A DNA stretch of 64,000 bases from Thalia democratica. Lineage: Eukaryota. The translations under genes were made by a program, and so were the position numbers. Below the pieces are notes generated by a model. That model was given only the letters and a program-made list of their open reading frames with translations, had not been told where the DNA came from and did no database searches. How positions within the stretch are numbered: the first letter of the stretch is position 1; each line of letters starts with the position of its first letter. Location of the stretch: the NCBI GenBank assembly GCA_965202585.1, contig OZ241832.1, positions 18,662,001 through 18,726,000 on the forward strand. The letters are read 5' to 3'. Positions 4,807 to 57,600 of this stretch are shown here, one piece after another.

Positions 4807-5355
4807 GTTTTTTTAGTTATAATAACAAATAAACTACTTGTTATATCTATCATTTAACTAATTTTTAGATATTTATAGTGGGGTTTATGTTAAGTTTTTG
4901 TAAGCATAGGTTAATAAAAAATACTTTTTGTTAAAAATTCTACTTCTAAACATTTGAACTATGAAGGTAGAAGTATGTTTTAAGATGTTAAGCTGAAAAA
5001 ATTTAAAACTTATTAGTTTAGTTTTTTTAATATCAGTTTCTGTAGTTTATTTTTTGGGAAAACTTTCAAAGATCCACTTTGAAAAATATATAACTTAAAG
5101 TTGTTTGAGTTTTTTTGTAACCTTAGTAAAATTTTATGAAGACAATGAAGTTTTACATTAGCTTTTTAAAAATAATAAATATCTCTTTTAACATAACATT
5201 ATTATTATCTCTTTTTTATATTTTTTTATTCTGTTTATTTTTTTAAATGAAGTAGTTGTTCAATTTTGTTTAAATTTTAGGTTTTGTTTTTACTTAGCTA
5301 TTTTATAAAATTTTTAAAATAAGACTATAAAAATATACAACTGAATTGTTATATA

Positions 5356-7400
5356 ATGGAGTTCACAAATGAAGAAAATTTGCTTCTTAATGAGGGTTAG
5401 TAAATTGTTATTATATTATCAAAAAAATTGTTTATTTTTTATGATTTTAATGCTAATTTATTATTTTGACAACTTAAAATTTGTTATAACAAGCAAAACT
5501 AAAGTTCTTTGGAAAATAGTAATTCAACTAATGTACTATAAAATTATGTGACAAAAAGTTTTATCTCGCTCATAAAGTATCTTGCATATAAAGTAATATA
5601 ACTACTGTACGAATTCGAGCTTATACATTTCTATTTATGCACAGGTGACATTTTTTATAAGATGTAATTTTTTACAGATGTTTCAAACCAAGCTAACCTA
5701 TTACCTATAAATCTTAAAGAAGTAATTGGTAAGTTACAAGTTGAAAGAAATTATTTCAAAACTCAAGTAAAAAACTTCAAAAAGAAAAGCAACAACTAGT
5801 TATTTCAAATAAAATTTTTTCAAAAAAAGTAAATTTTCTTGAAGAAAAACTTAAAACAACAATCACTTTGTAAGTTCTAGTGTTTGTATTTTAGTATTTA
5901 TTTAAATATAGTTCCAGTTTTAAGCGTTGATTTTTGTTTGTAGCAACCTCATTAGAATGTTTCTGCGTTAAAAGCTTAACAATTAACAACGAAGTAAAAA
6001 ATAAAATGTTTATTTAAAAAAAGGTCTGACAACAAAGTCACCACTGAAGTTAATTCAGATCAAGTTGAATCTTCACTGAATGATGTTGAACATGATAAAA
6101 ATATTTATAAATTAGTTAATAGTGTAAACTGTAAGTTACTTAACTTGTTTTTGTACTAATATTTAAAAATCTTTATTTAGAGATTAACTTTGATATATTT
6201 GTAAAGATGATTAATTACAAAATACTTTTGTACTAATTCTAATTGTTGAAAACTTTATATTAATAAAATTAAATGTATGTTTTTGGTCTGCTAAAGTTCA
6301 GTATAACTCCAAATTCTTAACTTTTATAGGTCTAAGTTCAACTAATCTTTTGAAAACTGGTCACTTAAGTGGGTCTTTTGAAAAAGTAAAATCTGAAGAA
6401 AATGTTTCATACAATGTGCATGAATCCCAAACTAACAATTTAAATAAAGGTAATATAAATATTTTAAAATTGTTATACAAAATGTTTACGCTAGTATTAT
6501 TTTAGATAATACCTGATCTTAAGCTTATGAAAAAATATATAAGTTAGTGGTCGAGTTAGTACCTTTCCCAAATTTACAGTTACTATTTTTTTTAAACAGT
6601 TACAAATTTTGTTATTAAAATAAACCTTAAATAAAGTATTTATTTTATTTATTACACTCATAGTTTTAGTAAATATTATTTTTTAAGATTTATTTCAGTG
6701 TATTCTTAATTTAATATAGAGCTTTGTGAAATTGAAAATAGATTAAATTGTAGTATTATTAGTGACACAAAAACTTGTTCAGTTATAAACTGATTCATAA
6801 CCTTAGTATAAACGGCATTTATATAAAACGAGATAATCATGCATTTTTTTTTAAATAACTTGTTACTTTTGTTTTAACACAAGCAATAATTTTTGTTTTA
6901 TTCATAATATATACGATATTGTTATTTTAACTGGATATGTATGATTTAAATCATATTGCAAATTTTTACAGAAAAACAATTTGGTTGTCAAGTATGTCAT
7001 AGAAAATACTCCACTAAAGTTTCTCTTTATCAACACATGAAAGTTCATGACAAATCGAAAAGTTTAAAGTGTGATGTTTGTTTGAAAGTTTTCTCTAGAA
7101 ATGCTGATCTCAAAAGACATTACAGAACACATACTGGAGAAAAACCTGTTGCTTGCCAAGTTTGTGATAAAAGATTTGCTCGAAAATCTGTATGAGTTGA
7201 ACATCAAACTACTCACATGGATATAAGAAATATCAAATATTCTATTTGCCCCGAAGGTAGATATTTCAAGACTAATAAACATTTATGTCAGCACATGAAA
7301 TTTCATTATGAACCAACATTTTCTTGCAGTCATTGAGGTCATAAAAGTTATACCTCAAGTGATTTAGTAAAGCATAGAAAACTCATCTTCAATTTTTTTA
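5356..7400 (+). pseudogene. Coiled-coil + 5x C2H2 zinc-finger gene A1, disabled
   Basis: Predicted exons 5356-5395, 5678-5869, 6024-6130, 6330-6449 and 6972-~7400 with GT-AG sites. Exon 2 is 192 bp versus 193 bp in the paralogs (frameshift). The finger exon has an in-frame TGA after FARKSV and a Cys-to-TGA change in the last finger. Confidence 0.82.
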
Positions 7401-8519
7401 ATTTTAATCTTTTGTTTCCTATTAGTGTCAAAAGTCTTAACATTTTAAAGAAAATAAGTTAAAATTTGTCTTTTTACAGTTATATTTATAAAAAAACATT
7501 CTAGTATATAAACAAACACATTGATTAGTTATTAAATATAATTACTTTTAGTGTTTGCTAATAGAAGTTCAAGCTAAAAGATTATATCAAGTCTTCTTTT
7601 AGTTAACTAACTGTATTTAAGTTGTAAAACAAAGTTCTAAAAACTTATTATTAGTAATGTAACTGTTTATTATTACTTAGTTTTTAAAATAATTTATTAA
7701 GATTTGATTAAGTTTTTTTTAGTTTTTTGTTATTTATTAAATACCTATTTCCGCTTTATAGTTAAGCTTTTTTTCATATATTTTAGAACTGTAAATAAGT
7801 ATTTTTGTTGAATTCAAAAAAAAAAAAACGATTTAAATAATTTTTTTATTATCTTTTTTGTTTAGTTTAGATATAAAAACTGTGAACCAGTTTTACTACA
7901 AAAAACCTTTTTTAAAATCATTATTTACTCATTGTTTATGACAGCTCTGCTTGTTACTAATTTTCTGTTGTTTAAATTAAGTAACTTAATTATTTACTAT
8001 TGTTTAAGTTTCAAATTTTATCGTATACTTACCAGATTTTTTAACTAAATAAATAGTTTTAAAAAAAAAAACCAAGTGAATTACTACATAAGTAATTCAT
8101 AGTTGAAAACTTGCTAAATAAAATATGGTTAGTCTTTTTTTATGTGTTTTAACTAAATAATATTTCAGTAATACTTATATTTCTACAACTTGCATAGAGC
8201 AATTTATTATAGTCCGTTGGTTTTAAGTTTATTTATAATGTTATATTAAACATTTTTTTTAAAATCACATATACTGTGTTATTTTATAAGCGTATATTTA
8301 TAAAAAAACTATTGTTGAAGGTTAAACTTGTTAATAAAACAACTAGAAAAACATTAGTATTTTTGAAAACATTTCTTAAAACTTCTAAATTCTAAAACCT
8401 CTAAACTTTAAAATTCTTAAAATGGGTTTTAAAAATTTAAATTATTAAAGTTTAAACTCTATCAGTAAATTTTAAAAGCCACTGGTAAACATATTTTTTA
8501 ATTGTTTAAATACTTACTG

Positions 8520-8830
8520 AAAAAGAACTTATTTTTCAAGTTTGTCATAAAAAAAGTTTTACCAGATATTCTCTTAATCAACACATGTAAGTTTAAGATA
8601 ATTTTATAAATTATAAAAGTGATGTTTGATTGAAAGTATTTTCATACAGATCATTGTTTACAAGACATCAGAAAACACTTACTGGAGAAAAACCTTTTGC
8701 TTGTCAAAGATGTGACAGAAAATTGGCCTTAAAAGTAACAAAGTTTAATCTCAAGCTACTCATAATATAGAAAAACGTTTTGCTTGTCAATCGTTTTGAT
8801 TGTCAAAATAATGTGATGGAACTTTTTCAG
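8520..8830 (+). pseudogene. Relic C2H2 zinc-finger exon D1
   Basis: Degenerate finger and linker text (SLNQHM, CDV, TGEKPFACQRCD) with frameshifts; paralog at about 28615-28930. Confidence 0.7.
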
Positions 8831-9122
8831 TAAACCTTACTTATTTCGACATCAACCTACTACAAGATTGTTAGAAATTTTAGAAGTTAAATTTGTTTAG
8901 ATTATTTAATTAAAGGTAGTTCAAGTCAACATATGATCTTCAATAATGGACACAAATTTTATTGAAAAGACTTTTCTCATATATTTTATTTAAATTTAAT
9001 TTGAAGTTTAAATCAATGTGTTTGCAACTTTTGTTTTAAAGTAAAAATATATAATTTTCCAGTTTTTAAAGACCTAAAAGTAAATTTAAATTATATCCCA
9101 ATAAGGTTTTTTTAATTATAAC

Positions 9123-9135
9123 CATTTAATTATTT
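9123..9135 (+). repeat. Left target-site duplication CATTTAATTATTT of the Penelope array
   Basis: Identical 13-mer at 17413-17425; present once at the empty paralogous site 29222-29234. Confidence 0.92.
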
Positions 9136-9328
9136 ATATAAACTTATTGTTAAACTTTTATTGCGTTACGCCGTTTCCCTGCAGAGCAGTTCATCAGACG
9201 CTAAAAAAAGCTGAAAACAAAAGTATACAGGGCGATGAATTGGAAAATAAAAATACACACATAATATATAAATGAAAATAATATTTACATTTGAAATATG
9301 AGTTTTAAATAATATGTGGTTTACAAAA
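9136..9328 (-). repeat. Inverted pseudo-LTR segment (193 bp) at the 5' end of the Penelope array
   Basis: Reverse complement of 11689-11881, including the hammerhead motif. Confidence 0.95.
9163..9201 (-). ncRNA. Minimal type I hammerhead ribozyme motif (inverted copy)
   Basis: Reverse complement of the motif at 11816-11854. Confidence 0.78.
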
Positions 9329-11377
9329 TATATGACCAAAATGTACCACCAAACGGCAAAGTTCATCAACAGGATGCGATGGAAAGTTTTCTTTCTCGAC
9401 AGAGACGAAGCAACCCAACCACCTGATGAATTTGCCAATATTTACAACAGCCGAAGATCAGCACCTGAATCAGACAAACTCAAAGCCTTTGAAAACGACC
9501 TATACGAAATCATCAGAAACCTCAAGTTCTCAAAATTTAGATCAAAGTACCAAAAGACTCTAAACAAAGACATAAAAAAGCTACTAAATAAGAAAATGAT
9601 TATAGTCTTTTCAGATAAAACATCAAACTTATACTATATGAATGCAAATAAATACAAGAAGCTAATGAAAAATAGCATAACTAGCGAATATTCAATTGAC
9701 AACGAAAATACCATTAATGACATTAACAACGAAGCAGCACAAATCCTAAGTAAACAAATGAGCTTAAAGAACAAAAAAGTTCCAAAATATGAAGTCAATG
9801 AAGCATTCCTTTCTATCAAAGACCATAAAGCGAACTTTCCACACGATATCAACTGTAGAATAATTAATTCATCTAAAACCCACTTAGGCAAACTGTCAAG
9901 AACCATCCTACAAAAACACATAACAACCATAAGAAAAAAATCCATGCTTAGCCAATGGAAAAACTCTGGAGAAGTGATAGATTGGTTCGAAAAAATCAAC
10001 AACAAAAACCACAAATGCTTCGTTAATTTTGACATTAAGAACTTCTACCCAACTATTAAAAGAAAGCACTTAATAGATGCAATCAACTTTTCCAACTCTT
10101 ATTCAAGGTTCACAGAGTTTGAGATAGAGACTATTTTACACACATGCAAATCAGTAATGTTTTACGATAATAATATGTGGAAAAAAACCAACTCCAATGA
10201 CAACTTCGACGTACCTATGGGATCATTTCACGGCGCCGAAATATGTGACCTTGTAGGTTTATACCTATTACACCATCTGTCTACGATTATAAACATTGAG
10301 TCAATTGGACTCTACAGAGATGATGGACTTGCCGTTATCAATCAAACAAATAAGAGTAATATTTGCAAAATAAAAAACAAAATTACAAAAAAACTAGCAG
10401 ACATAGGATTCGACATTACAATTAGTGCAGGTGAAACCTCCACCAACTTCTTAGACATACATTTAAACCTCCTAACTGATGATTATTGCCCATATGTAAA
10501 GCCAAACGCAAAGACCATCTATATTGACAAAGATTCTAACCATCCTAGAACAATTAAGAAAAATATACCAAAAATGATCGAAAATAGAATTTCAAAACTA
10601 ACAAAAAGCAAAGAATCATTTGATAACGCGAAACAAATCTACCAAAACGCTTTAAGCAAAAGCAACTTCCATCATAAGCTCGAATATAACCCAACAACTA
10701 ATAACAACAAAGCAAAAAACAGAAAAAGAAAATGTATATTTTACAACCCACCTTTCTGTGAATCAGTGAAAACCAAATTCGGAAACCTCTTTTTAAAACT
10801 GCTTGACAAGCACTTCCCACAATCAACAGAATTACACAAAATCTTCAATAGAAGTTCCACCAAGATATCATACTGCTGTTCCCCAAACATTAAAGCACTA
10901 ATAAGTGGACATAATAAGAAACTGCTAGAAAAACCACAAATAGAACCGAAGCTATGCAACTGCAGAAACAGAGAGCAATGTCCAGTAATGAATAAATGTA
11001 AATTAGAAAATGTAATATACGAAGCAATCGTCTCATCTGAGAAAAATAAGAGAATGTCATATATTGGATCCACCCGAAGAGCATTCAAAAACAGATTGTA
11101 CGAACATAGAGTATCATTTCCAAAACCAAACAAGAAGAAACCCGCCAACTGTACACAACTCGCCAACTACATGTGGAAATTATATGAAAAAGGCGAGAAA
11201 CCCACTATTGAATGGAAAATTCTCCGACAGACAAAAAGCAGATTTAAACCAAACTTCATGTGCTCGATATGTAACCTTGAAAGACTGTTTATAGCAAATG
11301 CTAACCAGAGAAAAATACTTAATAAAAGAAATGAACTAGTCACGCAATGCCCTCATTACCCTAAGGAATACTTTTAG
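9314..11377 (+). CDS. Penelope-like RT-GIY-YIG polyprotein, copy 1 (5'-truncated, with the first six codons supplied by the inversion junction)
   Basis: 687-aa ORF, identical from MTKMYHQT onward to copies 2 and 3. It lacks MTHSSDELILIDFKHSLKTIPITNKTLF. Confidence 0.9.
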   Translation: MWFTKYMTKMYHQTAKFINRMRWKVFFLDRDEATQPPDEFANIYNSRRSAPESDKLKAFENDLYEIIRNLKFSKFRSKYQKTLNKDIKKLLNKKMIIVFSDKTSNLYYMNANKYKKLMKNSITSEYSIDNENTINDINNEAAQILSKQMSLKNKKVPKYEVNEAFLSIKDHKANFPHDINCRIINSSKTHLGKLSRTILQKHITTIRKKSMLSQWKNSGEVIDWFEKINNKNHKCFVNFDIKNFYPTIKRKHLIDAINFSNSYSRFTEFEIETILHTCKSVMFYDNNMWKKTNSNDNFDVPMGSFHGAEICDLVGLYLLHHLSTIINIESIGLYRDDGLAVINQTNKSNICKIKNKITKKLADIGFDITISAGETSTNFLDIHLNLLTDDYCPYVKPNAKTIYIDKDSNHPRTIKKNIPKMIENRISKLTKSKESFDNAKQIYQNALSKSNFHHKLEYNPTTNNNKAKNRKRKCIFYNPPFCESVKTKFGNLFLKLLDKHFPQSTELHKIFNRSSTKISYCCSPNIKALISGHNKKLLEKPQIEPKLCNCRNREQCPVMNKCKLENVIYEAIVSSEKNKRMSYIGSTRRAFKNRLYEHRVSFPKPNKKKPANCTQLANYMWKLYEKGEKPTIEWKILRQTKSRFKPNFMCSICNLERLFIANANQRKILNKRNELVTQCPHYPKEYF

Positions 11378-11815
11378 TTTATTTTTTATCGCATTAACTT
11401 AGTTTATTTAGCTTATTTCATTCTATTTAATTATATTGTTACTTTGTATTTATGTTTGTATTGTATAAAGATTTTGTTTTAAAGTTACAACATTCCCGTA
11501 AAAAGACCATTTCTGTTTTCTAAAAATCCCCTACAAATCTTAGTATTTACATTTTTTCAAAATCCTAATATATTAAATGCTTAGTAAATAAATAAATTTT
11601 CTAAATATATAAAATCTATAGTTAATAAATTATTTAAACTAAACTTACCTATATTTCATTTTAATTTAACTTAACTTTAAAATTTAACTTTTGTAAACCA
11701 CATATTATTTAAAACTCATATTTCAAATGTAAATATTATTTTCATTTATATATTATGTGTGTATTTTTATTTTCCAATTCATCGCCCTGTATACTTTTGT
11801 TTTCAGCTTTTTTTA

Positions 11816-11854
11816 GCGTCTGATGAACTGCTCTGCAGGGAAACGGCGTAACGC
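11816..11854 (+). ncRNA. Minimal type I hammerhead ribozyme motif in the Penelope spacer
   Basis: GCGT-CTGATGA-A(CTGC TCT GCAG)G-GAAA-CG G CG-TA-ACGC. Stem I is GCGT/ACGC, stem II is CTGC/GCAG, stem III is the short ACG-G-CGT, and the predicted GUA cleavage is after 11850. Confidence 0.82.
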
Positions 11855-11982
11855 AATAAAAGTTTAACAATAAGTTTATATAATTCATATCTCCCACCAA
11901 GGATTGATAACTCTGTCTAGTTCTGTTTTTGTATCAAAAAAGCCTTTGCTCACTACTGGTTGGAGCACTCTTAAACTGCAGC

Positions 11983-14112
11983 ATGACCCACAGCAGCGAT
12001 GAATTAATTTTAATCGATTTTAAGCACTCCCTAAAAACCATCCCAATCACCAACAAGACTCTATTCATGACCAAAATGTACCACCAAACGGCAAAGTTCA
12101 TCAACAGGATGCGATGGAAAGTTTTCTTTCTCGACAGAGACGAAGCAACCCAACCACCTGATGAATTTGCCAATATTTACAACAGCCGAAGATCAGCACC
12201 TGAATCAGACAAACTCAAAGCCTTTGAAAACGACCTATACGAAATCATCAGAAACCTCAAGTTCTCAAAATTTAGATCAAAGTACCAAAAGACTCTAAAC
12301 AAAGACATAAAAAAGCTACTAAATAAGAAAATGATTATAGTCTTTTCAGATAAAACATCAAACTTATACTATATGAATGCAAATAAATACAAGAAGCTAA
12401 TGAAAAATAGCATAACTAGCGAATATTCAATTGACAACGAAAATACCATTAATGACATTAACAACGAAGCAGCACAAATCCTAAGTAAACAAATGAGCTT
12501 AAAGAACAAAAAAGTTCCAAAATATGAAGTCAATGAAGCATTCCTTTCTATCAAAGACCATAAAGCGAACTTTCCACACGATATCAACTGTAGAATAATT
12601 AATTCATCTAAAACCCACTTAGGCAAACTGTCAAGAACCATCCTACAAAAACACATAACAACCATAAGAAAAAAATCCATGCTTAGCCAATGGAAAAACT
12701 CTGGAGAAGTGATAGATTGGTTCGAAAAAATCAACAACAAAAACCACAAATGCTTCGTTAATTTTGACATTAAGAACTTCTACCCAACTATTAAAAGAAA
12801 GCACTTAATAGATGCAATCAACTTTTCCAACTCTTATTCAAGGTTCACAGAGTTTGAGATAGAGACTATTTTACACACATGCAAATCAGTAATGTTTTAC
12901 GATAATAATATGTGGAAAAAAACCAACTCCAATGACAACTTCGACGTACCTATGGGATCATTTCACGGCGCCGAAATATGTGACCTTGTAGGTTTATACC
13001 TATTACACCATCTGTCTACGATTATAAACATTGAGTCAATTGGACTCTACAGAGATGATGGACTTGCCGTTATCAATCAAACAAATAAGAGTAATATTTG
13101 CAAAATAAAAAACAAAATTACAAAAAAACTAGCAGACATAGGATTCGACATTACAATTAGTGCAGGTGAAACCTCCACCAACTTCTTAGACATACATTTA
13201 AACCTCCTAACTGATGATTATTGCCCATATGTAAAGCCAAACGCAAAGACCATCTATATTGACAAAGATTCTAACCATCCTAGAACAATTAAGAAAAATA
13301 TACCAAAAATGATCGAAAATAGAATTTCAAAACTAACAAAAAGCAAAGAATCATTTGATAACGCGAAACAAATCTACCAAAACGCTTTAAGCAAAAGCAA
13401 CTTCCATCATAAGCTCGAATATAACCCAACAACTAATAACAACAAAGCAAAAAACAGAAAAAGAAAATGTATATTTTACAACCCACCTTTCTGTGAATCA
13501 GTGAAAACCAAATTCGGAAACCTCTTTTTAAAACTGCTTGACAAGCACTTCCCACAATCAACAGAATTACACAAAATCTTCAATAGAAGTTCCACCAAGA
13601 TATCATACTGCTGTTCCCCAAACATTAAAGCACTAATAAGTGGACATAATAAGAAACTGCTAGAAAAACCACAAATAGAACCGAAGCTATGCAACTGCAG
13701 AAACAGAGAGCAATGTCCAGTAATGAATAAATGTAAATTAGAAAATGTAATATACGAAGCAATCGTCTCATCTGAGAAAAATAAGAGAATGTCATATATT
13801 GGATCCACCCGAAGAGCATTCAAAAACAGATTGTACGAACATAGAGTATCATTTCCAAAACCAAACAAGAAGAAACCCGCCAACTGTACACAACTCGCCA
13901 ACTACATGTGGAAATTATATGAAAAAGGCGAGAAACCCACTATTGAATGGAAAATTCTCCGACAGACAAAAAGCAGATTTAAACCAAACTTCATGTGCTC
14001 GATATGTAACCTTGAAAGACTGTTTATAGCAAATGCTAACCAGAGAAAAATACTTAATAAAAGAAATGAACTAGTCACGCAATGCCCTCATTACCCTAAG
14101 GAATACTTTTAG
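11983..14112 (+). CDS. Penelope-like RT-GIY-YIG polyprotein, copy 2 (709 aa from the first ATG)
   Basis: RT motifs FVNFDIKNFYPTI, VPMGSFHG, LYRDDGL and NFLDIHL; Cys-rich linker CNCRNREQCPVMNKC; GIY-YIG as VIYEAIV...SYIGSTRRAFKNRLYEH; C-terminal CSICNLE...LNKRNEL...CPH. The first in-frame ATG is 11983; the ORF-track start at 11929 is TTG. Confidence 0.95.
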   Translation: MTHSSDELILIDFKHSLKTIPITNKTLFMTKMYHQTAKFINRMRWKVFFLDRDEATQPPDEFANIYNSRRSAPESDKLKAFENDLYEIIRNLKFSKFRSKYQKTLNKDIKKLLNKKMIIVFSDKTSNLYYMNANKYKKLMKNSITSEYSIDNENTINDINNEAAQILSKQMSLKNKKVPKYEVNEAFLSIKDHKANFPHDINCRIINSSKTHLGKLSRTILQKHITTIRKKSMLSQWKNSGEVIDWFEKINNKNHKCFVNFDIKNFYPTIKRKHLIDAINFSNSYSRFTEFEIETILHTCKSVMFYDNNMWKKTNSNDNFDVPMGSFHGAEICDLVGLYLLHHLSTIINIESIGLYRDDGLAVINQTNKSNICKIKNKITKKLADIGFDITISAGETSTNFLDIHLNLLTDDYCPYVKPNAKTIYIDKDSNHPRTIKKNIPKMIENRISKLTKSKESFDNAKQIYQNALSKSNFHHKLEYNPTTNNNKAKNRKRKCIFYNPPFCESVKTKFGNLFLKLLDKHFPQSTELHKIFNRSSTKISYCCSPNIKALISGHNKKLLEKPQIEPKLCNCRNREQCPVMNKCKLENVIYEAIVSSEKNKRMSYIGSTRRAFKNRLYEHRVSFPKPNKKKPANCTQLANYMWKLYEKGEKPTIEWKILRQTKSRFKPNFMCSICNLERLFIANANQRKILNKRNELVTQCPHYPKEYF

Positions 14113-14550
14113 TTTATTTTTTATCGCATTAACTTAGTTTATTTAGCTTATTTCATTCTATTTAATTATATTGTTACTTTGTATTTATGTTTGTATTGTA
14201 TAAAGATTTTGTTTTAAAGTTACAACATTCCCGTAAAAAGACCATTTCTGTTTTCTAAAAATCCCCTACAAATCTTAGTATTTACATTTTTTCAAAATCC
14301 TAATATATTAAATGCTTAGTAAATAAATAAATTTTCTAAATATATAAAATCTATAGTTAATAAATTATTTAAACTAAACTTACCTATATTTCATTTTAAT
14401 TTAACTTAACTTTAAAATTTAACTTTTGTAAACCACATATTATTTAAAACTCATATTTCAAATGTAAATATTATTTTCATTTATATATTATGTGTGTATT
14501 TTTATTTTCCAATTCATCGCCCTGTATACTTTTGTTTTCAGCTTTTTTTA

Positions 14551-14589
14551 GCGTCTGATGAACTGCTCTGCAGGGAAACGGCGTAACGC
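14551..14589 (+). ncRNA. Minimal type I hammerhead ribozyme motif (unit 2/3 spacer)
   Basis: Identical to 11816-11854, offset by 2735 bp. Confidence 0.82.
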
Positions 14590-14717
14590 AATAAAAGTTT
14601 AACAATAAGTTTATATAATTCATATCTCCCACCAAGGATTGATAACTCTGTCTAGTTCTGTTTTTGTATCAAAAAAGCCTTTGCTCACTACTGGTTGGAG
14701 CACTCTTAAACTGCAGC

Positions 14718-16847
14718 ATGACCCACAGCAGCGATGAATTAATTTTAATCGATTTTAAGCACTCCCTAAAAACCATCCCAATCACCAACAAGACTCTATT
14801 CATGACCAAAATGTACCACCAAACGGCAAAGTTCATCAACAGGATGCGATGGAAAGTTTTCTTTCTCGACAGAGACGAAGCAACCCAACCACCTGATGAA
14901 TTTGCCAATATTTACAACAGCCGAAGATCAGCACCTGAATCAGACAAACTCAAAGCCTTTGAAAACGACCTATACGAAATCATCAGAAACCTCAAGTTCT
15001 CAAAATTTAGATCAAAGTACCAAAAGACTCTAAACAAAGACATAAAAAAGCTACTAAATAAGAAAATGATTATAGTCTTTTCAGATAAAACATCAAACTT
15101 ATACTATATGAATGCAAATAAATACAAGAAGCTAATGAAAAATAGCATAACTAGCGAATATTCAATTGACAACGAAAATACCATTAATGACATTAACAAC
15201 GAAGCAGCACAAATCTTAAGTAAACAAATGAGCTTAAAGAACAAAAAAGTTCCAAAATATGAAGTCAATGAAGCATTCCTTTCTATCAAAGACCATAAAG
15301 CGAACTTTCCACACGATATCAACTGTAGAATAATTAATTCATCTAAAACCCACTTAGGCAAACTGTCAAGAACCATCCTACAAAAACACATAACAACCAT
15401 AAGAAAAAAATCCATGCTTAGCCAATGGAAAAACTCTGGAGAAGTGATAGATTGGTTCGAAAAAATCAACAACAAAAACCACAAATGCTTCGTTAATTTT
15501 GACATTAAGAACTTCTACCCAACTATTAAAAGAAAGCACTTAATAGATGCAATCAACTTTTCCAACTCTTATTCAAGGTTCACAGAGTTTGAGATAGAGA
15601 CTATTTTACACACATGCAAATCAGTAATGTTTTACGATAATAATATGTGGAAAAAAACCAACTCCAATGACAACTTCGACGTACCTATGGGATCATTTCA
15701 CGGCGCCGAAATATGTGACCTTGTAGGTTTATACCTATTACACCATCTGTCTACGATTATAAACATTGAGTCAATTGGACTCTACAGAGATGATGGACTT
15801 GCCGTTATCAATCAAACAAATAAGAGTAATATTTGCAAAATAAAAAACAAAATTACAAAAAAACTAGCAGACATAGGATTCGACATTACAATTAGTGCAG
15901 GTGAAACCTCCACCAATTTCTTAGACATACATTTAAACCTCCTAACTGATGATTATTGCCCATATGTAAAGCCAAACGCAAAGACCATCTATATTGACAA
16001 AGATTCTAACCATCCTAGAACAATTAAGAAAAATATACCAAAAATGATCGAAAATAGAATTTCAAAACTAACAAAAAGCAAAGAATCATTTGATAACGCG
16101 AAACAAATCTACCAAAACGCTTTAAGCAAAAGCAACTTCCATCATAAGCTCGAATATAACCCAACAACTAATAACAACAAAGCAAAAAACAGAAAAAGAA
16201 AATGTATATTTTACAACCCACCTTTCTGTGAATCAGTGAAAACCAAATTCGGAAACCTCTTTTTAAAACTGCTTGACAAGCACTTCCCACAATCAACAGA
16301 ATTACACAAAATCTTCAATAGAAGTTCCACCAAGATATCATACTGCTGTTCCCCAAACATTAAAGCACTAATAAGTGGACATAATAAGAAACTGCTAGAA
16401 AAACCACAAATAGAACCGAAGCTATGCAACTGCAGAAACAGAGAGCAATGTCCAGTAATGAATAAATGTAAATTAGAAAATGTAATATACGAAGCAATCG
16501 TCTCATCTGAGAAAAATAAGAGAATGTCATATATTGGATCCACCCGAAGAGCATTCAAAAACAGATTGTACGAACATAGAGTATCATTTCCAAAACCAAA
16601 CAAGAAGAAACCCGCCAACTGTACACAACTCGCCAACTACATGTGGAAATTATATGAAAAAGGCGAGAAACCCACTATTGAATGGAAAATTCTCCGACAG
16701 ACAAAAAGCAGATTTAAACCAAACTTCATGTGCTCGATATGTAACCTTGAAAGACTGTTTATAGCAAATGCTAACCAGAGAAAAATACTTAATAAAAGAA
16801 ATGAACTAGTCACGCAATGCCCTCATTACCCTAAGGAATACTTTTAG
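14718..16847 (+). CDS. Penelope-like RT-GIY-YIG polyprotein, copy 3 (709 aa from the first ATG)
   Basis: Same protein as copy 2. Two synonymous C>T differences were seen, at 15216 and 15917. Confidence 0.95.
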   Translation: MTHSSDELILIDFKHSLKTIPITNKTLFMTKMYHQTAKFINRMRWKVFFLDRDEATQPPDEFANIYNSRRSAPESDKLKAFENDLYEIIRNLKFSKFRSKYQKTLNKDIKKLLNKKMIIVFSDKTSNLYYMNANKYKKLMKNSITSEYSIDNENTINDINNEAAQILSKQMSLKNKKVPKYEVNEAFLSIKDHKANFPHDINCRIINSSKTHLGKLSRTILQKHITTIRKKSMLSQWKNSGEVIDWFEKINNKNHKCFVNFDIKNFYPTIKRKHLIDAINFSNSYSRFTEFEIETILHTCKSVMFYDNNMWKKTNSNDNFDVPMGSFHGAEICDLVGLYLLHHLSTIINIESIGLYRDDGLAVINQTNKSNICKIKNKITKKLADIGFDITISAGETSTNFLDIHLNLLTDDYCPYVKPNAKTIYIDKDSNHPRTIKKNIPKMIENRISKLTKSKESFDNAKQIYQNALSKSNFHHKLEYNPTTNNNKAKNRKRKCIFYNPPFCESVKTKFGNLFLKLLDKHFPQSTELHKIFNRSSTKISYCCSPNIKALISGHNKKLLEKPQIEPKLCNCRNREQCPVMNKCKLENVIYEAIVSSEKNKRMSYIGSTRRAFKNRLYEHRVSFPKPNKKKPANCTQLANYMWKLYEKGEKPTIEWKILRQTKSRFKPNFMCSICNLERLFIANANQRKILNKRNELVTQCPHYPKEYF

Positions 16848-17285
16848 TTTATTTTTTATCGCATTAACTTAGTTTATTTAGCTTATTTCATTCTATTTAA
16901 TTATATTGTTACTTTGTATTTATGTTTGTATTGTATAAAGATTTTGTTTTAAAGTTACAACATTCCCGTAAAAAGACCATTTCTGTTTTCTAAAAATCCC
17001 CTACAAATCTTAGTATTTACATTTTTTCAAAATCCTAATATATTAAATGCTTAGTAAATAAATAAATTTTCTAAATATATAAAATCTATAGTTAATAAAT
17101 TATTTAAACTAAACTTACCTATATTTCATTTTAATTTAACTTAACTTTAAAATTTAACTTTTGTAAACCACATATTATTTAAAACTCATATTTCAAATGT
17201 AAATATTATTTTCATTTATATATTATGTGTGTATTTTTATTTTCCAATTCATCGCCCTGTATACTTTTGTTTTCAGCTTTTTTTA

Positions 17286-17324
17286 GCGTCTGATGAACTG
17301 CTCTGCAGGGAAACGGCGTAACGC
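17286..17324 (+). ncRNA. Minimal type I hammerhead ribozyme motif (3' terminal copy)
   Basis: Identical to 11816-11854, offset by 5470 bp. Confidence 0.82.
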
Positions 17325-17412
17325 AATAAAAGTTTAACAATAAGTTTATATAATTCATATCTCCCACCAAGGATTGATAACTCTGTCTAGTTCTGTTTTT
17401 GTATCAAAAAAG

Positions 17413-17425
17413 CATTTAATTATTT
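17413..17425 (+). repeat. Right target-site duplication CATTTAATTATTT of the Penelope array
   Basis: Matches 9123-9135. The downstream sequence CATAAAATCAAATATTTTGAC resumes as in the empty paralog. Confidence 0.92.
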
Positions 17426-18764
17426 CATAAAATCAAATATTTTGACTTAAAAAATATTTAATAATTTTGCTAAATCTGTCATAGGAAAAAAAATGCTAAG
17501 TAATTTTTGTGACATTATGTTCTTTTTTATTCTAAAGCTGAAGTAAGTGAACTTGTTATTTCTTAATTGTATTAAAATAAACATTTTTGACCCATAACAA
17601 AAATCTAGATAAATTAATAAAGTTTTAAAAAATGATATTTTATTTTTTTTAAACATTATTTGTTGTTATTGTAATTTGATTCGTACAAAGGAGATATAAA
17701 TTTTGAATATAACTCAGCAGCATAAATTGTTATTTTAGAATTTTCAAGATACCATTTGTTTATAATTTTAAATAAAAAAAAGATTTTTTTAATAGTTTTT
17801 AATTTTTGAAGTATTTAGTAAATTATTCTATTCATAATTATAGTCAAATATTTCTTGATCCATAACAAAAACATTACAAAATTAGTCAAACTTTATAATT
17901 TTTTTTTGAAGCTTGATAGATTTTATCTTTTTGTACAAGACATTGTTCAGCTCAAAATTAAATTGTAGATATTTTAAGATAATTTAGAAGCAGGAGTTAA
18001 ATTCTTCCTGTATTTTGGAAATATCCTTGTTTTAAAATCTTAATAAAAAATTTATTATAAAAAATTATTAGTTTTGAAAACTTGGTAAGTTGTTCTGCAG
18101 TTATGTTATTAATTGGTCTGAATAAGAAAATTGTATAATTATTTGTTATGTTATGACACAAGAACTTAAAAGTTAGTTGAACGGGATTAGTAAAAATTAT
18201 TATTAAACTATTTTCACTTAATATTACTTGTACTACATATATGTTTGAGTTGTTTGAGTTTTTTATTGAAGACTTTTAAATTACTTAGTAAGTTTGTTTA
18301 AAAAGTTTGAACGTATTAATTATTTTTGTATTATTTTTTATTAGTCTGTTATCTTAAACAGAAGAACATTCAACCAAGTAGTAAATAAAAACTTGTTAAG
18401 TAATAAAGTTTTAAAGCATTTTTCTAATAACAAAATGTTCATGTAATTTATTTATTCTAAAGCAATTTAATAATAGTGTAAAATCAATTTGAGTTAGTAG
18501 TTTTTTTTTTATCTCAACAAATTTGTTTCATTTTATTTAATTGAATTTTACTAACTTGTTAAAGTTATACTGTTGTAGTAATTTTTATAGTGTAAAACTG
18601 CACGATAAATAATGTATAGGTATTAGGTTTTAAGTTAAAAATTATAAAACAATATAGATTTTTTTTAATTTGTAAGTAATTTGTTTTTTTTTTAAGTTAA
18701 TATTAAAAGTTTATTTTTAATAGGTTTATAATTTAAATATAGTATATCTTCAACTGTCAACATT

Positions 18765-20861
18765 ATGGAATTTATAAACAATCTAGATAAAGGCAAGTTT
18801 CCTTATACAAGTTTTTATTTCTAATTTGTCATATATAAAACTGATTAAAGCTGTAATGTTATTATAGTAGTTGCTTTTTATATTTATTACGATTTATGAA
18901 AAAGTTAGTTTTAAAACAGCAGCTATTGTTTTAATAAAGTTTTAAAGTTTTAGTTAAATGTTATAATAGTTTTGAATTTATTATAATTAGAAAAAGATGT
19001 GTAGTCTTTTGATAAACTTAATCAATGTAAAAACAAAAAGTTTTAGAACAACTATTGATTAATTATTTTATAAATTACTTATAATTTTTATAGATGTTTC
19101 TAACAAAGCTAATTTACTACTTTCCAATTTGAAAGAGATATTTGAGAAATTGCAATATGAAAAAAACTACTTCAAAACTCAAGTAGAAAAACTGCACTAT
19201 GAGAAGAATCAATTAGCTATTTCAAATAAAAGTCTTTCAAAAAAAGTTGATTCACTTCAAAAAGAGTTAAAAAGAAAAACTTTTCCGTTAGTATATATTG
19301 TTTATTGAACCATTTAACAGCGCTCAAACATTTTGGTCTAAGGACTTGGTGTACTAAGAAACCTTTCGGTTATCAAGTAGTACACCGCAATATAATTATT
19401 TTATAAATAAATTTATGATCATGAGTACATGTAATTCTTAGAACATTAATATGTGTATTTTAAACTAAAAACAATTAGGTTTTTCTTACGTTATGAAAAA
19501 TAAAGTTCAATTATAAAATGATTCAATATATATTTTTAGTGAGAATAAATACAATAACCAAGTTAAATCAGATAAAACGGAGTTTTTATCTACTAATGTT
19601 GAGTTTGTTGATATTTTTGACAAACCTGTTATTTCTCCAAGCAGTAAGTTGTAAACTAATAAATTAAATGAGATATTTAATTTTATTTAAACTAAATTAT
19701 TAGTGTCAATTGTTTGTTTAAGTAACTATTTTTACAGTTTATTTTTTTTTTGTTACAGAAATAATCCTCGGAAGGACTGACAAAATTTTAACAAAATAAT
19801 ATTAATAAAAATTTTAATTGTGTTTATAAACTCCTAATTATTATAAACCTATCTTTAGTTATAAAAGTAAATTTAATAAAACATTCAGTAATACTGATTG
19901 GTCTTAAAATCTTGAAAAACAATTTACTTCGCAGAATATACAAAACAACAAAACCAAAATAGAAAATTGATGAAATCTAGTGACCAACTTGGAAGCTCTT
20001 CTCAATCTAATAGTAGTGAGTATGTTTCTAAAACGATCACTGTTTAACAACTGTTTTCTTAGTTTATAAAGTATATATTTTAAAACATTTTTGATCACTA
20101 AAGTATACCAAATTATTTAGTATATTTTAAATTACTAGTTTTAGTTATAAGTTGAAATTTTGTTCCTTCCATTTTATTCTACATTGTGTTAATTATATTA
20201 CTACTAAACAAATTTTGAATAATTAAACGACTTTAATTTTATATTACTGATTGTTTATTAAACTTTTAAATTAGAACTATATCTATAAACCATTATTATT
20301 TTTTAAATATAAAAGAAAAAATTTTTTTAAGAACTTAAATTTCTAATGCATTCTTAGAATTTAGATTAAAACGATAGTTATAACTTATCAGAACTTGATA
20401 CTTTTTTTGCTATGTTAGTGTTGATTTTTTATTTCAATACAACAGAAAAACATTTTCAAGTAGGTCATGATCACCTTTATAATGAGAATTTGCTGAACAA
20501 ACAAATTAATGAACAAATAAATCGAAAAGTTTTAAATGCGATGTTTGTTTAAAAGTATTTCCAAGCAAATCAAAGTTAACACAACATTATAGAGTTCATA
20601 CTGGAGAAAAACCATTTACTTGTCAAATTTGTGATAAAAAATTTGCACGAAAATCTCACTTAGTTCAACATCAAGCTACTCACAGTGATGTTAAAAAATT
20701 TAAATGTTCTATTTGTCCAGAAGGTAGATTTTTTAAAACAAAATATCAATTAATCACATGGTTTATCATTATGAACCTAAATATTCTTGCAGTCATTGTG
20801 ATCATAAAAGCTATAGAAAGTGTGATTTATCAAAGCATGAAAAACTCATGCACAAAATTAA
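18765..20861 (+). pseudogene. Coiled-coil + 4x C2H2 gene B1: finger exon frameshifted, short finger-less isoform still open
   Basis: Exons 18765-18792 (GC donor), 19094-19286, 19540-19643, 19935-20015 and 20446-20861. The last exon has 1-bp and 4-bp deletions relative to B2. An alternative terminal exon at 19759-19799 gives an open 121-aa ORF. Confidence 0.78.
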
Positions 20862-23800
20862 GTCTTACCGCTAAATAAAATACTTTATGAATCAAACTAC
20901 TGGTTAAATACTTCTTTTATAAAATAAAACTAATATTATTAGACTTCATTCAAGTATGGCTGCATTAAAGTAATGTTCATCAGTGATTCTTATTAGCAGA
21001 ACTAGTATGTATTTAAAAAAAAAATTAATACTACTATACAACTTACTACTTTACTGCTAACACTTTTTACTTTTATCAATTTAAGATAAATTGGATGTGT
21101 GCTTTAAGTTCTTATGAATTAAAGGTGTGAAAAGAATATTATATATAGACATATATACATATAATACTTATATAACATATATAACTTTATGAAGAAACAT
21201 ATATACATATATTTCTTCATAAAGTTTTTTTTTTAAGTTTTATTTATGCACAAATAATTAATTAAGTTCTATCTTTTGCACTTAAAACGTTTGGATTTAT
21301 TAAATTTTATTGCAGAAATATTATTTTGAAAAGTTTCTAGTTAAAATAACTTTTAAACTTTTAAACAGTTTGTTTCATTATTTATTTATTCATTTAATAT
21401 TTCTTTTTTTCTGAATTATAACTACTAGTTTTTATTTTGATTAAACACAATTTCTTAAATGTACGTTTGAATAGGTTACTTTTTGATCTTAATAAAAGTG
21501 CTTGATTTTTTTATGCACACAAATAATTTTACTTGTTGAGGACTATGTACAGAAACATTTATTTCTTTTATTGAAAAGAGTTTGTGTGTTTTGTTGTTTT
21601 AATTTAATTTAGAGAGTTTCAATTATAGATCTTACTAATAATAAATTATTTCACTCAACAATAATCAATAATGTATTTTGTAAGTCAATTAGATTAAAGT
21701 AAGCTTTATTATTCGATTTATTTTGAAGTTTTTGTTAATATTTTAAAATTAAAAAATTAAAATTATTTATACTTGTCAATTTCACTTTAATTTTAAAGCT
21801 TTTTACATAAAATAACTAACATGTACAAATTTTGATTTTTTAAGAACTTAAACGTTTTCTGTTTTAGAACTGTTTTTTTTTTATTAATCTTTATGCCATT
21901 GTTAGAAAGATGTTAAATCGAAAAATTATAGTTTAAGATAGCAATGTAGATGTGTTTTTAATACGTATATATTTTTTTAATTGTCAAGTGTTTACTGCTA
22001 ACACAAAATTTAATTGTAAAAAATATTCAAAGTCATTAGATTCAGAAATATTTCAAATAGATAATTAAAATATAGTATGAAAATATTTAATATCAACGTA
22101 TAAATATTTAACAAATACTTTTAATTGTTTAAAATTTTTTTTTAGTTATGCAGATTATTAACGTCAAACTATTTTGATACTTAGAAATTTGAAAGGATTA
22201 ATTGAGAATATACAATAAAATGTATATTAACCTGAAAAAACTAGTAGGAACATAACAAAATAAAAGTAAATACTTTACTATCTCTGATAAAACACTTTTT
22301 TATTTAATTATTGCAGAAAAATATAATTGAAATATCTTGGTATATAAAGTATAAACTTTGAAATAACATCGATTTAGATTTATTTCTCTAAACACTGTCG
22401 TTGTAAAATATTAAATTTTTAAACAATAAGAAAGTTTTTAATTTTGTATAAAATAATTACAAATATGTTTTAAATACAGTTTATATTTATCCTTTAAAGC
22501 AAAAGAACTCAAATTAAAAAGTCGATTCAAAATTGTTTATCACAAGTTCATTTCATATTAAAGTATCATTTACGAATGCAGAATATGAACAAAATTGTGA
22601 AAATATAAAAAGGTACTTTTTTTAAGTTTAATCAGTGAATTAAAGTTTATTTTTTGTAGAAATGTTAACTTTTAAAAATAAGTACAACCCATATTATTGT
22701 TACAGTTTTTTATATAATGCACAATAGTTTTTCAAAACTTTTTTTCATATAGATTTGTTATTGTCCTCTATCACTATAGTTATTATGTTTATGTTTTATA
22801 ACTTTATTTTAAATCTAAAAGTTTCTTTCCTTGGAGTTGTTTAAAATTTATCAAGGATCACTCTGAAAACGTTTTAAAACAATTGCTCAAAAGCTGAAAG
22901 AGGAGATATATATTAGTGTATTAGTCTACTTTAGCCCTTTTAGTTTCCGCTTCCCATAAAGGGCCAGTTAAATGCTTTAAATTCAATTGCTTATATTTCA
23001 AAAATTACTATGAGTTTAACAAGAAGTAAAAAGTAACAAAAAGCTTATCTAGTTATGTAAAAATAAATCTAAGTTTAAAAAAGTGTTTACTCTCTCCATA
23101 TGCCCTGGTTAGCTCAAGCTAATAGATATAAAATTAAAAAAAAAATCATAGAACAAACAAAACAAAAAAAAAATATTGGATAAGTTTAGTGAATAAATTG
23201 GTTGCTTGTCTGACAGTATAGTAATTGTTTCTAAATATACAGTTCTTTAAATAAAGGGTAGTGTTCTAGCACTTATGTTAGTTTTAGTAAAAAAAAAAAT
23301 TGTTTGTTAATAACTGCTAAGCTAGTATTTAATATACATTTTAAAGTTAGTTTTTACTTTGAGTTTTAATTGCTTTTTTAAAGTTTTTGTTAGAATTGGT
23401 TTTATACTTTGTAAATCTTAGATAGATGGTATGATATAAATTAATTTATATAAAAGTTCAGAAAAGTTTATACATGAATAAAAAACTAGAATATAAAAGC
23501 AAATAAAATGAACAATCTTTTTTTAAAAAATGAAGGTAAAATTATATAATATAAATTTAATATAAAAAAGTTATCTGCTTTGAATTAAAACTTGTTTTAG
23601 TTGTTCTACATCTTAAGTTTTAATTGAAATATTAAGTTAATATACAGATCTAAATTTAGCTCTAACTCAACCTAAGAGTAAGTATTTTGTTTATTGCAAT
23701 ATATTTTGTATATATATTTAACAATTTTAACCACAAGTTCAACTATCTAGTTTAATACCTTTGAACTTACTTAGTTTTGATTACAGTAGTAAAAATTTCA

Positions 23801-24500: not shown

Positions 24501-25424
24501 TTTAAAAAAACATTGGTTTTATGCCATTTATAAATAACTTATTTTTTTTGAAGGAAAACGTTTTGAAAGATAATAAGTTTTATTTTAATATGAATGCAGC
24601 AAAATATTTCAAAACTGGGAATGTTAACAAACTATTGTATATTCAGATACAATTAATGTTTTTATTTTTATTTTTTCAAGTATATTTAAATACTAAAAGA
24701 AGTATTATAAGTCTACAGTTTAATATTATTCTTTTAAGACACTTTATTTTTTATCTATTTAAAACAAATTAAGTATTTGTGTAAAGGTTATAAGTTTTGT
24801 AAGTAAAATTTATAAGAAAAAAAATTGAGATACGTTTCATTAAAAAATCAAGTTTATTTATATACTATTTTTTTTTTGGAGAATATGTACTACTTTGTAA
24901 AAAATTTTAGTGTTAGTTTTATTGTTTAGTTAAAATAACAAATTAACTGTTCGTTTGTATGTAACTTTTTACTTTATCTTCGTATATTTAGATTGTGTTC
25001 TTTATGTTGACATATGTTAAATTTTGTAAGCATATTTAAAAAAAAATCCTTAAACTTGGTTCTTGTTAACATGTTAATTATAAAGGCCTAAATATTTTTT
25101 AAGGTGTTTAGCTAAAAAAATTAGTTTTAGTTTTGTGTATATATAAAGTTATACAGTTAGCTTATTTTTAACATTCAAGTTTTCTACTTAAAAAACTTTA
25201 AAATTTAAAATTGTTAAAATTTTTAATTAATTTTATAAATTTCTAAAGTAGTAATAATTAAGTTTTACATATTATTAATATCTCATTTTGTTACTTTTTC
25301 TTTGTTTTTTTTTTAAATTAAAGTAGTTGTTCATTTTTGTTTAAATTTTAGATTTTGTTTATACTTGGGTATTTTAATAATAATTTAATTAAATTTTAAA
25401 AAACTACAACTAATTTGTCATATA

Positions 25425-28930: not shown

Positions 28931-30561
28931 ATCTTACTTATTTCGACATCAAGCCAGCTACAAGATTGTTAGAAATTTTAGAAGTTTTATTTGTTTAGAT
29001 TATTTAATTAAAGGTAGTTCAAGTCAACATATGATCTTCAATAATGGACACAAATTTTCTAAAAGACTGCTCTCACATATTTTATTTAAATTTAACTTAA
29101 GTATTTAAGTCAATGTGTTTGCAACTTTTGTTTTAAAGTAAAAACATATAATTTTCCAGTTTTTAAAGACCTAATAGTTAAATTTTAATTATAATCCCAA
29201 TAAGTTTTTTTTAATTATAACCATTTAATTATTTCATAAAATCAAATATTTTGACTTAAAAAAACTTTAATAATTATGCTAAATCTGTCATAGGAAAAAA
29301 TATTGCTAAGTAATTTTTGTGACATTATGTTCATTTTTATTCTAAAGCTGAAGTAAGTTAATTTGTTATTTCTATTAAAATAAATATTTTTGACCCATAA
29401 CAAAAATCTAGATAAATTAATAAAGTTTTAAAAATTGTTATTTTCATTTTTTTAAACATTATTTGTTGTTATTGTTATTTGATTCGTACAAAGGAGATAT
29501 AAATTTTGAATATAACTCAGCAGCATAAATTGTTTTTTTTTAGAATTTTCAAATAACAATTTGTTTATAATTTCAAATAAAAAAAAAGGATTTTTTTAAT
29601 AGTTTTTAATTTTGAAGTATTTAGTAAATTATTCTATCCATATTTATAGTCAAATATTTCTTTATCCATAAAAAAAACATTACAGAATTAGTCTAATATT
29701 TTTTTTTTTTTGAAGCTTGATAGATTTTATCTTTTTGTACAAGACATTGTTCAGCTCAAAATTAAATTGTAGATATTTTAAGATAATTTAGAAGCAGAAG
29801 TTAAATTTTTCCTGTATTTTGGAAACATCCTTGATTTAAAATCTTAATAAAAAAACTCATAAAAAATTATGAGTTTTGAAAACTTGGTAAGTTGTTCTGC
29901 ATTTATGTTATTAATTGGTCTGAATGAGAAAATTGTATAATTATTGTTATGTTATGACACAAGAACTTTAAAGTTAGTTTAACGGGATTAGTAAAAATTA
30001 CTATTAAATCATTTTCACTTAATATTACTTGTACTTCATATAAAGAGTTGTTTGAGTTTTTTATTGATGACTTTTAAATTACTTAGTAAGTTTGTTTAAA
30101 AAGTTTGAACGTAACAATTAATTTTGTATTTTTTTTATTAGTCTGTTTTCTTAAACAGAAGAACATTCAACCAAGTAGTAAATAAAAGCTTGTTAAGTAA
30201 TAAAGTTTTAAAGCATTTTTCTAATAAAAAAATGTTCATGTATTTTACTAATTCCAAGGCAATTTTATAAAATGTAAAATCAATTTGAGTTAGTAGTTTT
30301 TTTTTTTATCTCAAAAAATTTGTTTCATTTTATTAATTGAATTTTTAACTTGTTTTAGTTAAACTGTTGTAGTAAATTTTATAGTGTAAAACTGCACGAC
30401 AAATAATGTATAGGTATTAGGTTTTAAGTTAAAAATATAAAACAATATAGTTTTTTTTTAATTTGTAAGTAATTTGTTTTGTTGTTTAAGTTAATTTTAA
30501 AAACTCGTTTTTAACAGGTTTATAGTTTAAATATAGTATATCTTCAACTGTCATCATCATT

Positions 30562-55859: not shown

Positions 55860-57600
55860 GAAAAGACTGTTCTCACATATCTTATATTAAAATCAACTTA
55901 AAAATTTAAGTCAATTTGTTTGCATCATTTGTTTTTAAAAAAATTCATAAAATGTTTCAGTTTTTAAAGACCTAATAGTAAAATTAAATTATTTTCCCAA
56001 TTATTTTTTTAATAATTACCATTTAATTACTTCATAAAATCAATTACTTTGACTTATAGAAAATTTAAAGATAATGCTAAATCTGTCGTGGGAAAAAAAG
56101 TTGCTAAGTAATTTTTGTGACTTTATGTTCATTTTGTTCTAAAGCTGAAGTAAGTTAATTTTGTATCTTATATATATTAAAATAAACATTTTTAATCCAT
56201 AACAGAAATCTAAATAAATTAATCAAGCTTTGTAAATAGTTATTTTCATTTTTTTAAACATTTTTTGTTTTTATTGTAACTTGATTCGTACAAATAGTGT
56301 ATACAGTTTAAATATAACTTGACAGCATAATTTTTTTTTTTAATTTTCAAGATACAATTTGATAATAATTTTAAATAAAGAAGGATTTTTTAAATTGTTT
56401 TTAGTTTTTGAAGTATTTAGTAAACTATTCTATACATATTTTATAGTATAAAATTTCTTGATCCATAACAAAAAAGTTGCAATATAATCTATTTTTTTTA
56501 ATTAATTTTTTCAAAGCTTGATAAATTTTATTTTTTGTACTAAACATTGCTCAGCTCAAAAATTATATTGTAGATATTTCAAGTATAATTTAGAAGCAGT
56601 AGCTTAATTTTTCTCGTGTTTTAAAATCTTAATAAAAACTATCACTAAAAAAAGTATGAGTTTTGAAAACTTGGTTAGTTTTTCTGTAGTTGTGTTTTTA
56701 ATTGGTCTAAATAAGAAAATTGTATAATCATTTGTGGTGTTATGACACAAGAACTTAATAGTTAGTTGAACGGGATTAGAAAAGTTAGAATTAACTTATT
56801 TTCACTTAAAATTACTTATGCTAAATTTATAGAGTTGTTTGAGTTTTTTATTGATGACTATGAAATTACTTAGTAAATTTGATTAAAAATGTTTGAACAT
56901 ATTAATTAATTGCGTTTTTTTTTCTTATTACTGTGTTTTTTAAACAGAATAACATTCAACCAGATAAAAAATATAAGCTTGTAAAGTATAAAAGTTTTAA
57001 ACCATTTTCTAATAATAAAATTTTCATGTACTTTCTTTATTCCAAAACAATTTCATAACAATGTAAAATCTGTGTTAGTAGTTTTTTTATCTTAACAAAT
57101 TTATTTAATTTTATTTAATTGATTTATACTTAGTTATTTTAGTTATAATGTTGTAGTAATTTTTTAATTTAAAACTGCTTGATAAATAATGTATAGGTAT
57201 TAGGTTTTAAGTTAAAAATACAAAACAATCTATTTTTTTTTTCTAAGTTGTTTGTTTTATTGTTTAAATTAATTTCAAAAAATTCTTTTTAATAGGTTTA
57301 TAGTTTAAACATTGTGCATATTCAACTGTCAACAAAGTGGAATTTATAAACAAATTAGGTAAAGGCAAATTACGTTATACAACTTTTTTTAGAAGTTTTT
57401 GATATATGAAAATGAACAAAGCGGTAATTTTATTATAGTAGTTGCTTTTCATATTTGTTACAACCTATGAATAGGTTAGTTATAAACAACAGTTGTAGTC
57501 AAAGTTCCTACAAAAATCCTGTAATTTTTTAAACTTCTTAAATTAAAAAAAAAAACTTTGATGTCTTTTAATAAATTAGATCAATATAAAAACGAAAGTT
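55860..57600 (+). repeat. Third, more diverged partial copy of the zinc-finger unit (intergenic region plus gene-B exon 1 remnant)
   Basis: Colinear with about 29020-30830. It includes the empty Penelope target at 56020-56032 and an exon-1 homolog at 57337-57364 with ATG changed to GTG and the GC donor retained. Confidence 0.85.

Follow-up and report, generated by a model that had tools for sequence, protein, structure and literature searches.

A 64,000-nucleotide stretch of the Thalia democratica (Eukaryota) genome, hereafter the window (assembly GCA_965202585.1, contig OZ241832.1, forward-strand positions 18,662,001 to 18,726,000, numbered here from its first base), contains a head-to-tail array of a retroelement. 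We interpret this array as the product of a single recent event in which an autonomous Hydra-clade Penelope-like element (PLE) inserted into AT-rich, non-coding DNA that forms one copy of a local duplication, and we assign this interpretation a probability of about 0.88. The array spans 9332-17412 and amounts to 2.95 copies of a 2735-bp unit. An inverted, 5'-truncated arm precedes it, an exact 13-bp target-site duplication (TSD) brackets the whole, and paralogous segments in the same window display the single-copy target state directly.

The array, its target and its age

When the window is compared with itself at an offset of 2735 bp, array identity extends over 9332-17413 with 2 differences in total. 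Both are C>T changes found in unit 3 only (15216 and 15917), both are synonymous, and C occupies both positions in 26/26 other genomic copies examined. Units 1 and 2 are identical across 2611 bp. The inverted arm (9134-9328, 195 bp) is the reverse complement of 11689-11883, which corresponds to unit positions 2482-2676. A 59-bp tail closes the array on the right, and this stretch recurs within the array as the joints between units (11884-11942 and 14619-14677).

A sequence-only reading of the window had counted three open frames. Three open reading frames (ORFs) are indeed present (9314-11377, 11929/11983-14112 and 14664/14718-16847), but just two are full length. The proteins of units 2 and 3 are identical, with 709 aa each. 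The unit-1 ORF begins inside the inverted arm and reads six foreign residues followed by residues 29-709; 28 residues are thereby missing from its N terminus, and with them a K..I motif that is nearly invariant.

The duplicated target, CATTTAATTATTT, occurs as exact 13-bp copies at 9123-9135 and 17413-17425. Because one to two nucleotides overlap with the ends of the element, the true duplication is 10-13 bp. Besides these two copies, the exact 13-mer is found in the window only at 29222, within paralogue B, and the chance of an exact 13-mer at fixed positions in AT-rich DNA is roughly 1e-6. In partial paralogue C, the site at 56020 reads CATTTAATTACTT, which is one base off. Of the two empty target copies previously proposed, both are therefore uninterrupted, but the one at 56020 is not exact. 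We joined the left and right flanks and found that they align unbroken to 26088-32904 (90.2% identity over 6.9 kb) and to 55849-57492 (82%), with the target in single copy in each paralogous block. The duplicated blocks extend over approximately 5198-22756 and 25271-34594.

Precise excision is not a property of retrotransposons. For this reason, and because both paralogues hold a single copy of the target, the insertion is later than the duplications, as had been claimed along with the 13-bp TSD and the youth of the multi-unit insertion. The units differ at 2/2735 positions (0.07%), compared with 8-12% and 18% between the paralogous segments. Judged by sequence divergence, the insertion is later by a wide margin, if both C>T changes arose after it. 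With filled and empty sites side by side in one window of otherwise ordinary repeat content, the locus makes a textbook case. The surroundings of the insertion have a GC content of ~24%, and it is flanked by a C2H2 zinc-finger ORF (6956-7195, +) and a coiled-coil ORF (19129-19308, +), both of which are duplicated in paralogue B; should the two be parts of a single gene, the insertion would be intronic.

Coordinates of the insertion, its empty target sites and the landmarks of the 2735-bp unit
Feature	Position	Strand	Remarks
Left TSD copy	9123..9135	.	last 2 nt assignable to the element too
Inverted 5'-truncated arm	9134..9328	-	ends on its outer side at 2676, the main 3' terminus of the family; tail absent
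Hammerhead motif of inverted arm	~9162-9202	-	from motif scan
Filler TAT, 3 nt	9329..9331	.	head-to-head joint of inverted and direct arms
Unit 1, 5'-truncated	9332..11942	+	unit positions 125-2735
Hammerhead motif, unit 1	11815..11855	+	predicted cut after 11850
Unit 2, complete, 2735 bp	11943..14677	+	ORF 11983-14112: reverse transcriptase and C-terminal GIY-YIG-type nuclease (likely)
Hammerhead motif, unit 2	14550..14590	+	predicted cut after 14585
Unit 3, complete	14678..17412	+	ORF 14718-16847; two private synonymous C>T
Hammerhead motif, unit 3	17285..17325	+	predicted cut after 17320, 92 nt before the element's right end
Right-end tail, 59 bp	17354..17412	+	unit positions 2677-2735
Right TSD copy	17413..17425	.	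first C assignable to unit position 1 too
Empty target, paralogue B	29222..29234	.	exact 13-mer; block 25271-34594, 88-92% identical to insertion flanks
Empty target, partial paralogue C	56020..56032	.	one mismatch; block 55849-57601, ~82% identical
ORF	unit 41-2170
Hammerhead motif	unit 2608-2648		predicted cut after 2643
AATAAA	unit 2648
Main 3' terminus	unit 2676
Tail	unit 2677-2735

The encoded protein, the hammerhead motif and the clade

Pfam returned no match for the whole ORFs. When the reverse transcriptase (RT) part was searched alone, RVT_1 was recovered at E 4.5e-5, under the Pfam gathering cut-off. The protein belongs to a set of more than 473 homologues of ~700 aa with identity down to 36%, and an alignment of 50 homologues served for both the AlphaFold model and all calls of invariance. 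The model has a pLDDT (predicted local distance difference test) of 91.5. In structure searches it comes out closest to telomerase RTs (Foldseek E 1.6e-9), with a Candida telomerase as the top VIA match (Z 15.7). The RT motifs FDIxxFY and YRDD356 are found in the protein, together with RWK44, DKT123, CxCx5C570, VIY589...YIG605, CSIC672 and CPH701; W45, D123 and K124 are invariant.

The C-terminal domain is likely a GIY-YIG nuclease, as judged from its sequence motifs and the predicted model. The last 120 residues carry VIY589-x13-YIG605, R616, H620, E678 and N692, all of them invariant. Residues 589-684 of the model form the order strand-strand-helix-helix-strand-helix that is expected of GIY-YIG, and the nearest named ESM Atlas clusters of the nuclease part are GIY-YIG (0.95-0.96). 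Just N-terminal of the nuclease, the linker at 570 reads CNCRNREQC, which is the sole CxC of the protein, and no Cys or His occurs at 589-608, between GIY and YIG. The lists from fold searches with the whole model filled up with RT and polymerase matches. The nuclease domain folded alone, without an alignment, gave an unusable model (pLDDT 39). A profile of the 50 homologues found no match among PDB sequences, and NCBIfam on the same homologues gave weak retron and Drt3a RT matches and no nuclease families. By sequence, the ORFs of units 2 and 3 are intact and keep all family-invariant residues; competence for transposition is not something that sequence can decide.

We scanned for the string CUGAUGA...GAAA and found one motif per unit (2608-2648) and one opposite-strand copy in the inverted arm. 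The predicted layout runs from a 4-bp helix I (GCGU/ACGC) through the CUGAUGA core to a 4-bp helix II whose 5' end has an unpaired A, followed by GAAA, a helix III of 2 bp and its 3-nt loop, UA and the predicted cut site. The genome holds four more families of this clade with an identical layout, in which the helix I and helix II sequences are entirely different yet complementary. Across the five families, the core and three helices show compensatory changes. The motif is a predicted minimal type-I hammerhead of the kind described for metazoan PLEs (PMC4209133).

Similar strings occur elsewhere in the window. A canonical-looking minus-strand hammerhead core lies at 43840-43900 (core ~43883), with CUGAUGA, GAAAC and a 6-bp helix II (GUCCUA/UAGGAC), in apparently non-coding DNA distant from Penelope-like ORFs. 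In addition, two inverted repeats of ~1.06 kb (49028-50088 and 53535-54592), 86.7% identical and 3.4 kb apart, each contain a CUGAUGA...GAAA string, at 49209 (+) and 54410 (-). A tblastn search of these repeats found no Penelope-like coding sequence, and tblastn of the window found no further Penelope-like coding remnants.

The element had been called Penelope. It is a Penelope-like element, but its motifs place it in the Hydra clade, an assignment that we make by diagnostic traits rather than by a tree. Craig et al. 2021 (PMC8557442, section 11) describe Hydra-clade elements as shorter than 3 kb, with one ORF and, at its C terminus, a GIY-YIG nuclease. They carry RWK, with DKT substituted for DKG, the CCHH finger is absent from the nuclease, a CxCx5C linker is present, CxxC and CxH motifs lie around a conserved E and N, and hammerheads are easily detected (PMC8557442). 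Here, the 2735-bp unit has one 709-aa ORF with no CxC domain upstream of the RT, RWK is at 44 and DKT at 123, CCHH is absent, the linker is CxCx5C, and CSIC672 and CPH701 lie around E678 and N692. Because the DKG and CCHH traits both fail, this is not Penelope/Poseidon in the strict sense. The features of PLEs in general are also present: a telomerase-like RT, head-to-tail tandem units with an inverted 5'-truncated copy on the 5' side, a predicted hammerhead motif in the untranslated region, a tail at one insertion end only, a TSD whose length varies, and copies that mostly lack their 5' part.

The family across the genome and the origin of the array

We surveyed the family across the 801.8-Mb assembly (1833 contigs, with the window on contig C8). 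The unit search gave 972 first-look candidates, and, at up to 3 mismatches, a 39-mer of the hammerhead occurs 359 times and a 33-mer of the tail 69 times. A diverged clade member used as query gave 10,926 candidate coding matches. Family copies are mainly 5'-truncated, with 5' ends that range over unit positions 45-1375; most end at 2675-2678 and a minority at 2735. Identity to the window unit is as high as 99.6-99.9% in several dispersed copies, and the family has therefore been recently active.

Direct repeats of 12-15 bp were found at the edges of 23/27 other family copies sampled. The inverted-arm-plus-tandem architecture also recurs, since a locus of another Hydra-clade family (L043, C2:48182000-48191999, ~48.18 Mb, viewed over 10 kb) opens with an inverted arm of 2.1 kb, after which come at least 2.5 direct copies of a 3069-bp unit, with arm and units ~99.9% identical. 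The sequence-only reading had taken clean TSDs to be often hard to define and this copy to be unusually legible. With clean TSDs normal for the family and a comparable array at ~48.18 Mb, the copy is legible but not exceptional. The insertion is an ordinary, if unusually easy-to-read, example with a structure typical of the Hydra-clade group.

The direct array of the window insertion runs on to 2735 and so includes the tail; its inverted arm stops at 2676 and has none. We collected head-to-head pairs from genome-wide hammerhead and tail coordinates, that is, from pattern searches rather than sequences, and the tail was on exactly one arm in 13/13. Three aligned insertions, including that of the window, show the same pattern, for a total of 16/16 two-armed insertions. 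A tail at a single end is a published PLE trait (PMC8557442, fig. 2 legend). For an Anolis element in vitro, Frangieh et al. 2024 (PMC11167929) reported that reverse transcription starts at two adjacent internal sites with the tail between them. The one-tail pattern of this family fits the two RT start sites of that work and its cutting and extension of both strands.

The mechanism of PLE transposition is still poorly understood. In the event that we propose, the GIY-YIG nuclease would cut the target strands ~13 bp apart, and both 3' ends would prime reverse transcription. On one strand, synthesis would start at the far end of the tail (unit position 2735) and cross almost three unit lengths of template, while on the other it would start at the main start site (2676) and halt after 195 nt. 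A head-to-head joint with 3 filler bases would then link the two cDNAs, and repair of the gaps would duplicate the 13-bp target. What we infer in this account is that both strands primed, that two start sites were used and that all three units arose in one event.

Several observations weigh against this interpretation. The nuclease domain is unmatched in Pfam, NCBIfam and PDB sequence searches, and an Rfam scan of 8500-18000 at E<=1 matched no family. Almost all families of the Hydra clade are reported to insert into (TA)n microsatellites (PMC8557442), a tendency rather than a defining trait, and this is not seen: the target is AT-rich and non-microsatellite here and in 23 other duplications. 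The data fit later in-place growth of the array as well as they fit three units in one event. The unit count itself is read from the assembly alone. Across 24 short-read contig runs, mostly marine metagenomes, the contigs support the left junction, and neither the right junction nor the inverted/direct joint is among them. Runs that hold the element come from marine metagenomes and two coded organisms. The sequence-only reading had asked for spanning reads, and at the left junction, but not beyond it, an error-free contig covers 9018-9159 (two runs of one sample, organism A) at depths matching the unique flanks (~38x and ~30x). That contig includes just 24 element letters past the duplication, and its support is weak because the sample may be the one used for the genome assembly.

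We also considered a contig ending at 9135 as an empty allele and rejected it, as its differences match paralogue B exactly and it thus represents the empty site of that paralogue. In the left flank, short-read word depth rises from ~100-200 to more than 12,000 in the 130-bp bin 8631-8763; a very high-copy short repeat apparently lies there, ~400 bp upstream of the insertion.

Three alternatives concern how the units came to be three. An assembly artefact, in which near-identical repeats were collapsed or expanded, would be in keeping with units 99.9-100% identical, with the trouble that such arrays cause assemblies (PMC8557442) and with the short-read nature of all runs examined. We think it improbable, given that the assembly is chromosome-scale with contigs >100 Mb, probably built from long reads exceeding 8.3 kb, and that the outer units have anchors of their own, unit 1 in its unique joint to the inverted arm and unit 3 in its two private variants and the right flank. 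There is a somewhat better, though still small, chance that the insertion was first shorter (the inverted arm and ~1.95 units, a partial tandem of the usual kind) and gained a unit by unequal sister-chromatid exchange or replication slippage. The identity of units 1 and 2 over 2611 bp, with private changes in unit 3 only, speaks for such growth. So does the apparent rarity of arrays with two complete units: within the family, two 2735|1 joints one unit apart occur at the window locus only, and the other family tandems have 1.1-1.5 units. Against it, that both mutations fall in the same unit out of three has no statistical significance, the L043 array of inverted arm and at least 2.5 near-identical units indicates that multi-unit insertions recur, and published models already use templates exceeding one unit (PMC4209133). 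About as doubtful, in our assessment, is that the array arose by repeated passage over a one-unit template during a single insertion, and not from a three-unit transcript. This could have been a rolling circle on hammerhead-cut, ligated circular RNA, a circular template having been proposed in PMC4209133, or jumps between RNAs, in which the RT left one template at its 5' end and resumed in the tail of the next. As only the window locus of this family has two complete units in the assembly, no other locus could supply an RNA of ~8 kb.

The remaining alternative questions the element itself. That it is some other retroelement, such as a long interspersed nuclear element (LINE), DIRS or an array of cellular RT genes, would suit the RVT_1 score under the Pfam gathering threshold and the lack of a GIY-YIG profile match. 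We regard it as barely credible: the best structural matches are telomerase RTs, the full clade-specific motif set is present alongside the hammerhead, the tail, tandem units with an inverted arm, and duplications that vary over 12-15 bp, and a poly(A) tail, long terminal repeats (LTRs) and apurinic (AP) and restriction-enzyme-like (REL) nucleases are all absent. A Hydra-clade PLE inserted in one event remains the account that we prefer.

Three further loci concern the unit ends. Two single copies, L007 (C1:6254483) and L010 (C1:111825075), start 12-25 nt upstream of unit position 1 and end at 2676. By their sequences, these starts inside the tail hint at transcription start in the tail and a short terminal redundancy, which could guide template jumps. 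At C7:19384534-19384612, the 29-mer of the 2735|1 junction occurs twice, 50 bp apart, each time with unit positions 1-35 only, which makes an odd, short duplication of the 5' end.

Comparison with known systems

The insertion shares with the Hydra clade (PMC8557442) a hammerhead in the 3' region, tandem and inverted insertions, and an aquatic host, which is marine here. It differs in its target, AT-rich unique DNA as opposed to (TA)n, and in its tail, which is 59 bp compared with 30-40 bp in the clade. Compared with the minimal type-I hammerheads that Cervera & de la Pena 2014 (PMC4209133) describe for metazoan PLEs and retrozymes, the predicted motif has the same topology, short helix I (4 bp), 2-bp helix III, 3-nt loop and unpaired base at the 5' end of helix II, with a single ribozyme per tandem unit, but its helix II is 4 bp whereas the first-described minimal forms have 7-8 bp.

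Penelope of Drosophila virilis and the Poseidon element PAc of Anolis carolinensis (PMC11167929) combine an RT with a C-terminal GIY-YIG nuclease, as the present element likely does. They also share partial tandems that act as pseudo-LTRs, a 5'-truncated, inverted copy placed 5' of them, a tail that is optional and lies between two RT start sites, a preference for AT-rich targets and a hammerhead motif. Unlike the present element, those clades carry DKG and a CCHH between GIY and YIG. In PAc, the hammerhead and start sites overlap the ORF start, whereas here they are in 3' untranslated sequence, 470-565 bp past the stop codon. PAc cuts and extends both target strands in vitro (PMC11167929). 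The family described here is young, with hundreds of near-identical copies, clean duplications, two sharp 3' termini and a strict one-tail pattern, and it supplies in-genome constraints that agree with the two RT start sites and both-strand cutting seen in vitro.

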